A DNA stretch of 64,000 nt from contig JAKMXF010000144.1 in NCBI GenBank assembly GCA_024704765.1, positions 124,001 to 188,000 of the forward strand. The letters are read 5' to 3'. Shown here one piece after another: positions 1 to 64,000 of the stretch. The stretch's first letter is position 1. Every line of letters starts with the position of its first letter. The translations under genes were made by a program, and so were the position numbers. The notes beneath the pieces are model-generated. The model was not told the origin of the DNA. It did no database searches and saw nothing but the letters and a program-made list of their open reading frames with translations. The DNA is from Oopsacas minuta. Its lineage: Eukaryota; Animalia; Porifera.

Positions 1-613
1 TTTCCAAGTAAATATTATATATACAATTTTTGTCAGTTGTATTTACACTCGAGCATGTTAGTGTAAATATAAATATAAATACAAATAGATTCCTGTAGTC
101 TTTCGCGTCATTTCTTGTATACCGCTTTCAGTATATAAATTTAGTAATTATGTTGTCATTGTAGACATTTATAATCTTTGATTTACGTAAACACCAATGC
201 TTCTTTGGTTTCTGTTTACACATAAGGATGTATGTCTATTCCACCCTTCTGTTCTCCACATTCTTGAATGTTTCCCTAGCAACAGCACCCTTTAAACAGG
301 GCTAATACTGAACTGGTCTTACTAACCCTTTTCTAACCCTGTAAAAATGGCCCAGGTGACCCATAGTCTCTGATTAAGATCCTAGATTGGTTCGCTCCCC
401 CCTAACCACCTGGACGCCTCCTACATATATGAATATGAAATCGTGGCATCATTTTGTGATATCCAAATTCTCCATTCCATATACCACTAATCGTATCCAA
501 GTTTAGTAATATAATATTCACTGGGTGGTTACATGATACCATCCTAGTTAGGCTTACTTCTATGGCATAGTTCCTATAATTAGTTCCAGTTTGAAATTAA
601 GTAGATTTTAGCA

Positions 614-3600
614 ATGGCGAGTTTGAACGGTAAGCAGATAGCTAATCTCAAAATGGAGAAAATCGCGAAAGAAGGGAAGGTGTTGAAAAGAGGTTAGTTC
701 CATATGTAACTATAGAAATTATGATATGACTTAATTAACACCTTTGTAACTTATGTAGGGGAACATATACACACCTGGCGCCCTAGGTATTTCATCTTGT
801 TTGAAGATGGTACACTCGTAGGGTACAAAACTAAACCAGCAAACCCTGGAGCAGATTTCTTAAATATTTTCTCTGTAAAAGGTATGCGATTAAACCTGAA
901 ATATGATTGGTTGATTGCTCTGTATTTGTTATAGGCTCTCAGATCACCAAAAAGAACTTTTCTGGGAAGCCAGGATTCACTCTAAGGTCAGTTATGCACA
1001 CCCAGGGGGGGACGGGGCGCTTAAGAGGTGTTAAGAGGAAGGCAGATATGATAATCAGCTGTTTATAGGTGTCTACAGATAGATGCATATGTTGATAGGA
1101 ACTTCCAGCTTGAGGAAGATTCCGACAGGTTAGTTGCATTGGTCTTTTATATATGAGAGGAGAGTACGATCTTGACCGGAAGGGGCTTTCACACCTTATT
1201 CGTATTAATATGTGTAATAACTTAGAGATGAATGGTGCATGCAGATAGAGAGAATTGGCTCAAAAGTGTCCGCACAGGCCCGCATTGCTGACACAACTAA
1301 TCCAGACGACATGTCACAATTTACTGATCCTTCAAAAACCAAATCTAAGATAGTAAGTATATTACATCATACATTATTTTTGCTGCGTATGTTTTGTATA
1401 ATAATAATTATTCATATATCTGTTCTGATTAATAATAATAATAGTAATTATGTCAGCTATTTGCAATCGTTTTCAAAATGTATCCCTATATTCTGCTAGA
1501 TAATATTATCAACTTGTATATACATCACAGCCACTTTATGCCACATATATGACCCTCTCTCCCTCTCTCCCTCTCTCTAGACTTTAGAGGACTTCGAGTT
1601 ATTGAAAGTGCTCGGTAAAGGAACATTTGGGACTGTAAGTCTGATTTGTACTAAAAGTAGCTTATTTTTAATTCAGTTTGTTATAGGTTATGTTAAGCAA
1701 AGAGAAATCTTCTGGAGAGATATTTGCTATAAAAGTCATCTCCAAGGAAATGATTATTGAAAAGGTAACCAACAGTGACACATTGTGTACCCTCCCATAA
1801 TTATTGACGACATAATTTGTCCACTAGGGGTCTCAAAAAGTGGTACCATCGGGTGTCTAGTCATCCTAGCCTATTTGCCTCCTATATATGCTTACCCCTG
1901 TTTATTTGGCGCGTAAAAACTTCTAAGCAAAATTTCAATGAGTAGGTATATTTAGGCGCGCAATTGCGGGGGTGAGACACCTCTAGATAGTAACATTCTA
2001 CCTTACTGTAACTACGTCATATTAACTATTGATAACACTTCTAGGATGAAATCAAACATACTTTGACAGAGAATAAAGTATTGCAGCAGACTAAACACCC
2101 CTTCTTAACAGTAAGTTATTATTAGTTCCTTAAGCCAATCAATTTACAGTCTCAGATAGGCATTATGAATGAATACCATGGGTAGCTTATTGGATTGGAG
2201 AGGCCATTTTGCTATCTACATATTACCCACATATTTTGATGATTATTCAATGAAATAAAGATTCTTGGAGGCCGCCTTGGAACTTGAGTCACAGGTCAAA
2301 TGACCTCTCTCTCAGAGGGCATGTAACCACTACGTAACGAGTAGCGTAGAACATCGTTTATAATATGAACACCAACGAACAGTCAAAATTTGTTCGCTTT
2401 ATCCGAAGTTCATATTCAACGGAGTAATATCAATTGAGTAATCATTGTAAGAGACCTGTTGAATGATGATTAGATCTTAATTATGTCTTAATATTCATGT
2501 TAACGGTTACACATCAAAATACATCAATAGATTATCCGCCAAAATGTTCTGGTATATTCTCAAACCTGATAGCGCGACACATATTGTGACCTATCTCAGA
2601 GAGTTTTCGAGATTTCGCCTAGATATTTGAATATACACCTAAAAATACCATATTCTACATTGCTACCGAATTTCAAGTCCATAGCTCTTACCAGTTCTTC
2701 AATACAAATTAGAGTTATAGTATACAAGTTTACACGCTAGCATATTGTGTCACAAATCTATAAGAATATACCACTTAACACCTATTACTGCTTATATGTA
2801 ATATATATTACACATCATCTACACCTACAGGGCTTGAAATACTCATTTCAAACTAAAGACAAACTCTGTTTCGTTATGGAATACGTCAATGGAGGAGAGG
2901 TAACTAGTTTAATTATACACTAATACAATTATCCTAAGAGTATAGTTCTACTCCTGTTTTTGCTGTTTCCTAGCCTCTCGGAGTATCAGCGTCATCTCTT
3001 CCCGCTTTTTCTTGGCGCGTCGATGGGTCCCGAGGCGTCTTTTCACGAACTTAAGTGCCCTCTTGTCCCTCTGCACCTTGAGGAGCTCTTGACACCTTTT
3101 CTCGTAAGGGGAGAATCCGACAACTTCCCGAATTAGCTCCCGTATGTGTTTCACACGTTTGTTAAGCCGTCCCTTCCGACGGGCGGGACGTTCCCTTGGG
3201 GACTTATAGGGGGTAACACGGTGGCCTTTCTGCAGCCCAACTGATATTTGAGGAATTTTCCTACTTCGTTTTGTCATAATAACAAATCTAATAAAGTACA
3301 CGCCAGATTAATACAATGCATTTCTAAGATACAAACGATATGGGTTGATAATATATGAATAGTATTAAATTTCTATTTTCCTTATAAAGTTATTCTTCCA
3401 TCTCTCTCGTGAGAGGAGATTCTCAGAGGACAGGTCCAGGTTCTATTCAGGAGAGATCACCCTTGGACTGGAGTACCTGCACTCTCATAAGATTATATAT
3501 AGAGATTTGAAGGTAAGGGACGATTATTTATGGAGGCACTATTTCAAGTGATTTTAATTTTCACAATTGGAGATGTTAAAATATGAACACCAAGGAGTCC

Positions 3601-4655
3601 TGGGGGGGACAAATATATGATTAATTATGACACCTCTGATAGCTTGAGAACCTCCTATTGGACCAAGAGGGTCACATAAAGCTGACAGACTTCGGTTTAT
3701 GCAAGCAGGACATAGCTTATGGGGATACAACTAGTACCTTCTGTGGTACCCCAGAATATTTGGCGCCTGAAGTCATAGAAGATGATTCATACGGACTCTG
3801 TGTTGATTGGTGGAGCTTAGGTGTCGTGCTTTATGAAATGATTTGTGGCAGATTGCCATTTTATCATCAAGACCATGATCTGCTATTTGAAGTTATACTC
3901 ACGGTAAGTAGAATACTTCTTATATGACACTAATTATAAGTTAGTTCCAATTACATAATAAGTTAATTAATAATCATGACGTCACATAGTATTGTTATGT
4001 CAAATAGGCATTAAGACTGGGTAATCTGATAGGTCTACCCACTTACATACTATATGGCTTTCATTATCCAAATCAGCTGATTATATCCCGTATGTATTCT
4101 AGAAACCTGTAAGATTCCCTCATGACATATCCGGTAAAGCTATGTCAGTTCTTGAAGGCCTACTAAGGAAAGATCCTAGCCAGAGGTAATTAAATTATAG
4201 TGGCTATTTATAGAATAGAGGTGTTATATGGAAGTATAACATATTGATGGAGTATTTTTATAGGTTGGGAGGTGGTAAAGACGGGCCTGCTGAGGTCAAA
4301 TCACACCCTTTCTTCGCTAGCATTGATTGGGAGAAACTCTTCAATAAAGAGGTGATAATTATGCGAATACTTTCACATATATTCATTTGTTATTATTTAC
4401 TTCGTTTGTAGATTGATCCACCATTCAAGCCCAAAATCAAAAGTGTGACAGATGTGTCCTACTTCGACACAGAATTCACTTCAGAAAACCCTCAAAAAAC
4501 TCTTGCAGCTGGTAAGTCTATAAATCACATGTATATGTATATATTTACACACCTTTTATATTCATATAGCTCCCGTCTCTACAAGCATGGGTAACAAAAT
4601 GGAGAACACTTTCCCAGATTTTACATTTGTAGACAAGGATTCACAGCTGAAATAG
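614..4655 (+). CDS. AKT: RAC/AKT serine-threonine kinase (PKB), 15 exons
   Basis: Exons 614-692, 759-881, 935-986, 1069-1128, 1226-1352, 1581-1634, 1687-1764, 2045-2110, 2831-2899, 3390-3512, 3643-3903, 4103-4185, 4264-4351, 4412-4511, 4570-4655; all GT-AG and phase-compatible. PH motif [29 protein letters not shown], activation loop [12 protein letters not shown], hydrophobic motif FPDFTF. Confidence 0.96.
2948..3277 (-). CDS. RPL36: 60S ribosomal protein L36 (eL36), intronless, nested antisense in AKT intron 9
   Basis: [10 protein letters not shown]...[50 protein letters not shown] matches eL36. First ATG is at 3277 (the ORF track extends to a GTG at 3301). ATTAAA lies on the minus strand at 2913-2908. 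Confidence 0.95.
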
Positions 4656-62868: not shown

Positions 62869-63293
62869 AAATAAAGTAAACATTTTTATTGAATTAATTA
62901 TTCTATTTTTAGAAACTTGTGTTGCTATGGTGATTTCTCTGGAATGTTTGTATGTGAATTCTCAATTCTCTCTACAATCTTTCTCAAGAGACGGGAATCT
63001 TAAATAAAATACAAAAATGTATCGATTTGACACGTGAATATTGACACTAATTATAGTAACAATGTATTGAATATTTCCTTTATTGCCTAATTCGAAAGTG
63101 GAACGTTTGGAGAGGCTAATGGTCCAATTATTGCACTCATAGGGGGACATTTAGAGGGACAATGGTCGACTGAAATGCAAGTGTTGGGTCTTTATCTACA
63201 TATAGCATATTTCTTCACTTGTTATTAATTTACTAACTAACATTTCTGGCCAATCAAAAGCTTTAGCTCGTGACAGCTGTGCCATTCAACCAC

Positions 63294-64000
63294 ATGGCGG
63301 GTAATTTCTGGAAGAGTTCACACTATGAGGAATGGCTCCTGCACCCACAGGAATTGGAACTAGGCCGCAGAGAGGATTGTGAGGTTCTGACTAAGGAGCA
63401 ATTATTGAAATTACATATTTTCTACGCTAATTTTATACAAACATTAGGAGAACATGCTCTTCTGAGACAACAGGTATTATGTGACACATTTGTGACACTT
63501 TTTGGTGGCACAAATGTATAGGGAATGTGTCCTAGGCTTCTGCCACTTTTTACGATTAATTAATTAATTTAGTTCCGGTTGAATTAGCATTAAATGCACA
63601 TAGTTCCATATAATAACACTTTCCTCAAGGTAATCGCTACAGCATCAGTATACTTCAAACGATTCTATGTGAGGAACTCTCTGAGATCTGTAGACCCCCT
63701 CCTCATGTCCCTGACCTCTATACACCTAGCTGCCATAGTGGAGGAGTGTGACATGCAGACCGGCTCTAAATTGACACAAGCATACTCGGGAGCTGTCAAA
63801 TCAAAATTCAGAGACTATTTCAGTGTGGAATGCCCCTTCAATTATCAGACGGTTAGTATAAACAGAACTAACACCTTATAGTTCCAGTTTAGTGGTATAT
63901 GATTAGGGATATGGGTATAGGCTTCTGTGGTTCATTTTTGTAGTTTATAGTTACAGTTATAGGTTCTGGAATGTGAATTCCTTCTCCTCGAAATGATGGA
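63294..64000 (+). CDS. CCNC: Cyclin C (truncated by the window end)
   Basis: Exons 63294-63473, 63630-63851, 63963-64000. MAGNFWKSSHYEEW, LRQQ|VIATASVYFKRFY, DPLLM, VLECEFLLLEMMD. Confidence 0.93.

Follow-up and report, generated by a model that had tools for sequence, protein, structure and literature searches.

The 64,000 nucleotides (nt) of DNA analysed here (the window) correspond to bases 124001–188000 of contig JAKMXF010000144.1 (assembly GCA_024704765.1) of Oopsacas minuta, a hexactinellid (glass) sponge with a compact genome; base 1 of the window was fixed at base 124001 of the contig by an exact look-up of the CRELD-like protein. Start codons in this stretch tend to be preceded, often immediately, by a YAG trinucleotide (i.e., TAG or CAG), and these YAGs are probably acceptors for spliced-leader (SL) trans-splicing that are apparently used by most genes. 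This reading had been put forward earlier from the letters of the window (hereafter, the original prediction), and our analysis supports it only in part, since the RNA contig ends listed gave a single direct junction, at one gene, and a search for an SL RNA gene in the window and the other fetched loci was negative. The O. minuta genome paper makes no use of the terms trans-splicing, leader, UTR (untranslated region) or operon, and the public annotation, with 16,413 genes, comes without UTRs.

The direct junction was seen in RNA. Four sequencing runs of one sample (X1–X4) hold the region, and their assembled contigs were mapped onto window positions 33100–39099 (a second search, limited to RNA-Seq libraries, listed no run). 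Runs X1–X3 are DNA-like, with colinear contigs of kilobase length over this interval, and X4 is RNA-like: INTS15 shows GT..AG joints and has an intron with zero depth, and exons are covered at high depth. One X4 contig of 875 nt matches the genome only from position 38919 on and carries 11 non-genomic letters (AAAAAACTTAC) ahead of it. Positions 38919–38920 are AG and position 38921 opens the CRELD ATG, so that the RNA reads as a leader ...CTTAC(AG)AUG; the two letters shared with the genomic AG represent the ambiguity that is usual at junctions, and the 3′ end of the leader at CRELD would be ...AAAAAACTTACAG. No exact copy of the 11-mer was found on either strand in 83 kb around CRELD (including the 39 kb upstream in the window and a further 19 kb to its left), and the DNA-like runs X1–X3 were colinear, with no junction at 38919. 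Together, these two results point to a join made at the RNA level, to a far sequence or to another locus.

Among the loose contig ends listed for X4, those at cis introns all mapped to the neighbouring exon with 1–2 nt of ambiguity. No GT..AG joint ending at 38920, 38316 or 35942 was present in X4, even though internal introns did show, and the CRELD acceptor lies only 98 nt past the upstream stop codon. The simplest reading is that a leader ending in AG was joined exactly at the TAG/ATG of CRELD, i.e., at the TAG at 38918–38920 (+) adjoining the ATG at 38921. At this one gene, the mRNA 5′ end thus carries sequence that is not encoded beside the gene, and the leader is joined at a canonical AG without a paired upstream donor (38918–38921). 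That the overhang is limited to 11 letters could reflect leader variants that differ further 5′. The AG at 38920 was the first of the examples at which the original prediction had anticipated a non-genomic leader in RNA.

The start codons used for the distance statistics were those of the public NCBI annotation and are independent of the original prediction; 30 of them lie in the window and another 14 in the adjacent 19 kb on its left (n = 44). The annotated gene ranges were taken from look-ups returning the called genes around a protein, which removes any bias of the earlier start choices. Six starts were also confirmed by our own open reading frame translations, which equal the annotated proteins exactly; within the protein collection, exact matches to window proteins came from the NCBI genome record only. 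The start codons assumed in the original prediction agree with the annotation, both by exact protein matches and by gene ranges, including the AIG1 start (23291) that had been picked partly by means of the signal itself, and the ten sequence contexts quoted there were all found in place.

The distance from the ATG to the closest YAG ahead of it is at most 19 nt in 25 of the 30 genes annotated in the window, at most 10 nt in 19 genes and at most 4 nt in 13 genes, which nearly reproduces the earlier counts of 26, 20 and 13 among 29 genes. For the full set of 44 genes, this distance is at most 1 nt in 16 genes, at most 4 nt in 24 genes and at most 10 nt in 31 genes. The other 2843 ATGs in the same 83 kb served as a control and had a YAG at these distances in 5%, 14% and 30% of cases, corresponding to 2.3, 6.3 and 13.4 expected genes (binomial p-values of 4e-10, 6e-10 and 6e-8, respectively). 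Dinucleotide-preserving shuffles of each gene's own upstream 60 nt yielded on average 3.3, 7.5 and 14.7 genes, and the highest counts among 2000 shuffles (12, 17 and 26) all fell short of those observed. By these controls, the chance figure given earlier (8–9 of 29 within 10 nt) was about right, and the distance distribution over 44 genes and 83 kb is in clear excess of background. The enrichment of YAG next to start codons is therefore confirmed as real.

This excess is local, with 26 YAG ends within the 10 positions around the ATG vs. about 7 per 5-nt bin elsewhere; 18 of these ends lie 1–5 nt upstream, and 8 abut the ATG or fall just within the coding sequence. TAG is the most frequent trinucleotide ending within 4 nt of the ATG (20 of the 44 genes), followed by TTA (19) and ATT (16), both of which overlap TAG in the frequent ATTAG, and TAA is far below TAG with 9 occurrences. 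Distances of 0, 1 and 2 nt are all frequent and a 3-nt periodicity is absent, from which it follows that the signal is not due to in-frame stop codons. The nearest AG is an AAG at two genes (starts at 15673 and 46957), and the largest YAG-to-ATG distances in the window occur at 19137 (43 nt), 46957 (42 nt), 43631 (30 nt) and 15497 (23 nt). Three annotated genes, with starts at 19137 (228 amino acids), 15497 (590 amino acids) and 20828 (340 amino acids, ODF2_C), lie on the minus strand.

The prefoldin-6 gene, located just left of the window, has relatives at 62–72% identity on ENA assembly contigs, and these contigs are, judging by gene order, other hexactinellid genomes. In the loci compared (L007, L012, L013 and L014), O. 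minuta shares a common order (dynein heavy chain, VPS37, PEBP, (SERF), hypothetical, RRP36, hypothetical, dsRBD-EDF1, kinase, PFDN6, epsin, ..., bZIP_Maf) with two or more further hexactinellid assemblies, at a protein identity of only 55–88%. Orthologous starts were located by tblastn in three such assemblies (L008, L012 and L014), and a YAG was found within 10 nt at 2 of 2 starts in L008, at 7 of 10 in L012 (2.8 expected; p-value of 0.007) and at 9 of 10 in L014 (2.3 expected; reached by 0 of 2000 shuffles, p-value below 0.0005). The YAG distance moves by a few bases between orthologues and the flanks are unlike by eye, so that an AG beside the ATG looks to be conserved across the class.

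The pre-ATG sites were compared with 22 cis introns, 18 of which were obtained by fitting annotated gene ranges and protein lengths and 4 from the RNA joints in INTS15. The cis introns end in TAG (18/22) or CAG (4/22); positions –5 to –8 hold a pronounced run of T, and position +1 is a G. Of the 38 YAGs found within 19 nt of an ATG, 31 are likewise TAG, and the sequence upstream is G-poor, as in the cis acceptors; the typical site is (A/T)TTAG, often TAATTAG, and is followed by A in 16/38 and by C in 12/38 cases. In the 100 nt ahead of the starts, no words are more enriched than TAATTA and TAATTAG. The likeness of the pre-ATG sites to cis acceptors thus appears good but not complete: the TAG preference noted in the original prediction is indeed shared with the cis introns, and the T run is missing at the pre-ATG sites.

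In the mechanism that we propose, the YAGs just upstream of starts would be 3′ splice acceptors for trans-splicing, to which a separate SL RNA would contribute a short leader exon bearing a cap, and the primary transcript upstream of the AG (the outron) would be discarded. The mature 5′UTR would then consist of the leader plus 0–20 nt of gene sequence, and at CRELD the leader would abut the AUG. The transcriptional start site (TSS) could lie anywhere upstream, including inside a neighbouring gene or in a shared primary transcript, and genes only 74–200 nt apart would thereby become possible. We infer that most genes receive the same leader, that splicing takes place at the nearest YAG and that genes in tandem share a primary transcript.

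The X4 contigs around three gene boundaries bear on which AG is used. Three colinear X4 contigs cross the spacer from the end of one gene and stop 7–9 nt into the next coding sequence (35623–35958, 38115–38327 and 38774–38930), bridging WD40 to INTS15, INTS15 to TM2D, and TM2D to CRELD, respectively, although a contig spanning two genes is no proof of a single molecule. In an assembly graph with k = 31, a colinear path competing with a leader-joined path ends 29 nt past the first shared base. The contig ends at 35958 and 38327 lie exactly 29 nt after the A of the AG at 35929–35930 (INTS15) and at 38298–38299 (TM2D), as predicted by a leader ending in CAG. The putative leader-join sites indicated by these ends are a TAG at 35928–35930 (+), 20 nt upstream of the INTS15 ATG (35951), and the AG at 38298–38299 (+), which is part of an AAG 19 nt upstream of the TM2D ATG (38319). 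The candidate acceptor of TM2D in the original prediction was the nearest one, i.e., the TAG at 38314–38316 (+), 2 nt from the ATG. If the contig ends are read correctly, the acceptor used is not always the AG nearest the ATG. This evidence is weak, since a nearby variant could equally break a contig. The RNA found across the spacers would be expected from precursors that are unprocessed or polycistronic, or from 3′UTRs reaching into the acceptor of the next gene.

An SL RNA gene combines a leader exon with a GT donor and an Sm-binding site (AATTTTGG-like). A search of the window for the leader followed by AG, allowing at most one mismatch, returned two chance-level matches and no exact one, and the leader followed by a GT donor was not found with up to two mismatches in the window or in the other fetched loci, including L007. 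The whole window gave no Rfam match at gathering scores, and a literature text search for the last ten letters of the leader together with "spliced leader" gave no match.

Several observations weigh against widespread use of the YAGs as trans-splicing acceptors. Among the loose ends listed for 33100–39099 there is one direct junction, with a leader of 11 letters on one gene, and neither the window nor L007 nor any other fetched locus yielded an SL RNA gene. The contig ends at TM2D and INTS15 favour AGs 19–20 nt upstream over the nearest ones, one of them being an AAG, and the third colinear contig end (38930) fits no AG; at INTS15, TM2D and CRELD there are, in addition, RNA contigs that pass the AG colinearly. 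The pre-ATG YAGs are AT-rich and are devoid of the strong T run that cis acceptors have at –5 to –8. Finally, in the hexactinellid Aphrocallistes vastus a leader of about 37 bp was present on 4% of long cDNA reads (genome paper of 2023, PMC10282587). The view that the AGs are outron acceptors is backed by the CRELD leader junction, by published SL trans-splicing in hexactinellids and by the conserved signature, and its assumption that the nearest AG is the one used is called into question by the TM2D and INTS15 contig ends.

The incomplete likeness to cis acceptors, i.e., the missing T tract, is the main support for a different explanation, in which (A/T)TTAG or TAATTAG is mainly a core-promoter or initiator element, with the TSS at or near it, 5′UTRs of a few bases and a leader in a minority of genes. 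That TAATTA and TAATTAG top the enriched upstream words, that other promoter-like words (TAGTTCC and TCACACCT) cluster in the same 20–110 nt, and that so few A. vastus reads bear a leader would all suit such an element. However, the sole readable junction among those listed is a leader join and not a transcript start, and RNA contigs traverse the sites from upstream. Moreover, the enrichment peaks at the AG, 0–4 nt from the ATG, the distances shift between orthologues while the AG stays, and the preference for TAG equals that of the cis introns. We therefore regard a mainly promoter-type function as unlikely.

The resemblance of the sites to cis acceptors could also mean that the AGs belong to ordinary cis introns of the 5′UTR, in which case each gene would have a short first exon without coding sequence, and an overhang of 11 letters is too short for the mapping tool to place on its own. 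Nevertheless, neither strand of the 83 kb contains that overhang exactly, X4 lacks the GT..AG joints at 38920, 38316 and 35942 that such introns would leave while revealing the internal ones, and many spacers offer little room (15 of the 25 tandem genes start less than 200 nt from the upstream stop, and the divergent Rab and snurportin ATGs are 89 nt apart), making this explanation highly improbable. Still harder to credit is that the pattern is a mere by-product of AT-rich upstream composition, of in-frame stops before the first ATG, or of start choice. The upstream regions are indeed AT-rich, TAG is a stop codon, and one start had been picked with the help of the signal; yet the starts used here come from the public annotation (six of them confirmed as exact proteins), shuffles that keep the dinucleotides never reach the observed counts, the three shortest distances show no frame effect, TAA falls well short of TAG within 4 nt (9 vs. 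20), and the pattern recurs in other species. SL trans-splicing at the pre-ATG YAGs hence remains the reading that we favour.

The arrangement of the genes fits with this favoured reading in a further respect. The upstream neighbour is known for 43 genes and lies in tandem with the gene in 25 of these cases, with a median stop-to-ATG spacer of 162 nt and 15 of the 25 spacers below 200 nt, and 20 of these 25 tandem genes have a YAG within 10 nt of the ATG. Short same-strand spacers and a putative acceptor before downstream genes, as seen in operons resolved by SL trans-splicing, are thus present in the layout. One example is a six-gene same-strand chain in the annotation (46419–58669, +), consisting of KPNA, a KPNA duplicate, LIM-RA, PAXX, Mito_morph_reg and KATNIP, with successive stop-to-ATG spacers of 537, 162, 153, 95 and 74 nt. 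The ATGs of Rab and snurportin, 89 nt from each other, are on opposite strands. Since such spacers are too short for a private non-coding exon plus an intron, ordinary cis-spliced 5′UTR introns are very unlikely here. The likeness to operons is one of gene order and spacing. The stronger proposal that about 70% or more of Oopsacas genes get the leader, and that tandem arrays with 74–200 nt spacers are polycistrons resolved by trans-splicing, is a possibility that we consider rather doubtful. If true, it would mean that a sponge has operons and that many mRNAs have the leader as their entire 5′UTR, in which case start-codon recognition would depend on the leader itself.

Putative acceptors next to annotated starts are spread over the window. 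On the plus strand, a TAG lies 2 nt before the AKT start at 614 (609–611; the orthologues in L012 and L014 have a TAG at 0 and 1 nt, respectively), 4 nt before the LisH-WD40 start at 34280 (34273–34275), 1 nt before the importin-alpha start at 44690 (44686–44688), 1 nt before the LIM-RA gene start at 48621 (48617–48619), 4 nt before the KATNIP/DUF4457 start at 54280 and 74 nt past the stop of the upstream gene (54273–54275), and 3 nt before the snurportin start at 60058 (60052–60054). On the minus strand, a TAG lies 1 nt before the PTGES2 start at 21943 (21945–21947), this start being confirmed by the exact annotated protein, 1 nt before the annotated AIG1 start at 23291 (23293–23295), 4 nt before the start at 23785 of a 128-amino acid HEAT protein (23790–23792), 1 nt before the F-box/LRR gene start at 28626 (28628–28630), 7 nt before the start at 59968 of Rab, which is divergent from snurportin (59976–59978), and 2 nt before the SNAP29 start at 62328 (62331–62333).

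An inverted CCAAT box adjoins the acceptor (gattggttag) of the O. minuta importin-alpha ATG (44676–44688), and one is likewise found before the prefoldin-6 ATG of another hexactinellid (at about 70–85 of the L008 sequence). A complete gene for a ribosomal protein L36e of 109 amino acids lies antisense inside an AKT intron (2951–3277, –), with a TAG 10 nt before its ATG; it is missing from the called genes of the public annotation, its orthologue in L014 is called, and the exact O. minuta protein was not found in a collection of 15 billion proteins.

Two other words stand out in the window. TAGTTCC has 66 sites on both strands vs. 8.4 ± 2.8 in shuffles (e.g., 568–574, 581–587, 38273–38279, 38290–38296 and 54252–54258); it occurs in exons, introns and spacers, frequently as palindromic pairs (GGAACTA..TAGTTCC), and in sense orientation it is concentrated 15–110 nt upstream of starts, as well as upstream of orthologous starts on other hexactinellid contigs. 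It may be a promoter or TSS word. The idea that TAGTTCC is an acceptor followed by a conserved exon start was rejected, as joining at that TAG would not explain where the TM2D contig stops. The word TCACACCT, which we take to be a T-box half-site, has 39 sites in the window vs. 2.4 ± 1.6 expected (e.g., 34256–34263 and 38867–38874). A longer form, tcatattttcacacct, is located 24–54 nt upstream of the WD40 and CRELD starts and is so widely repeated in the genome that contigs of the DNA-like runs break and cross-join there (34243–34266 and 38851–38874). The branch-site pairing of the U2 small nuclear RNA is conserved, and the distance from TCACACCT to the AG varies from 12 to about 94 nt; a role of this word as branch-point motif is doubted for both reasons.

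In the same region, a 1049-nt spacer separates the divergent NHL and WD40 genes, and RNA-like X4 contigs cover it (33615–34229). Within this spacer, positions 33900–34099 show a DNA word depth of about 10 times that of the surroundings and contain hairpins at around 33965–33985 and 34037–34080. No Rfam family matched the spacer, which may represent a non-coding RNA or a repeat that is transcribed.

As a mechanism, SL trans-splicing was known before, also in hexactinellids. What appears to be new, as far as the genome can tell, are the sign of its use by most genes, acceptors that often abut the ATG, conservation across hexactinellids and an operon-like layout. Should the majority of glass-sponge genes undergo trans-splicing at the start codon or beside it, the usual way of reading 5′UTRs, promoters and gene boundaries would fail in these genomes, and the 4% of A. 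vastus reads that bear a leader would be a large underestimate. The tight same-strand runs would then qualify as candidate operons, the first in a non-bilaterian animal that does not belong to the known SL groups. The YAG-to-ATG distance in turn offers a simple genomic test for the extent of trans-splicing in a lineage with little RNA data.

SL trans-splicing in hexactinellids was reported by Douris, Telford and Averof (2010), according to the passages citing that work in PMC7986045 and PMC5619915, and a review counts hexactinellid sponges among the groups with SL trans-splicing while operons are not reported there (PMC7986045). These reports concern the same class, and the leader was seen there as a clipped, unmapped 5′ part of cDNA, i.e., as a non-genomic 5′ leader of the mRNA like the one at CRELD. 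They are based on expressed sequence tags or long reads and the acceptor position is not described in PMC7986045 or PMC10282587, whereas the O. minuta genome suggests that acceptors lie 0–10 nt from the ATG in most genes.

More distant systems show both likenesses and differences. The SL1 and SL2 systems of Caenorhabditis elegans, like the one proposed here, use unpaired acceptors near the start and discard the outron. The C. elegans acceptor is TTTTCAG with a strong T run, in contrast to the mostly (A/T)TTAG of O. minuta, and SL2 is a second, operon-specific leader, whereas none is known in O. minuta, whose operon likeness rests on layout. Downstream genes in C. elegans operons are about 100 nt apart. 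Outrons in C. elegans can be short as well, with a 10th percentile of 59 nt (PMC3730108). The chordate Oikopleura dioica likewise has a compact genome, with a leader placed on unpaired AGs at both operon and single genes (PMC6389100). The AG is usually followed by A in Oikopleura (PMC6389100), compared with A in 16/38 and C in 12/38 cases in O. minuta. Moreover, trans-splicing affects 39% of the genes in Oikopleura, where operons are documented, whereas the share in O. minuta is estimated from sequence, with a YAG within 10 nt of the ATG in about 70% of genes.

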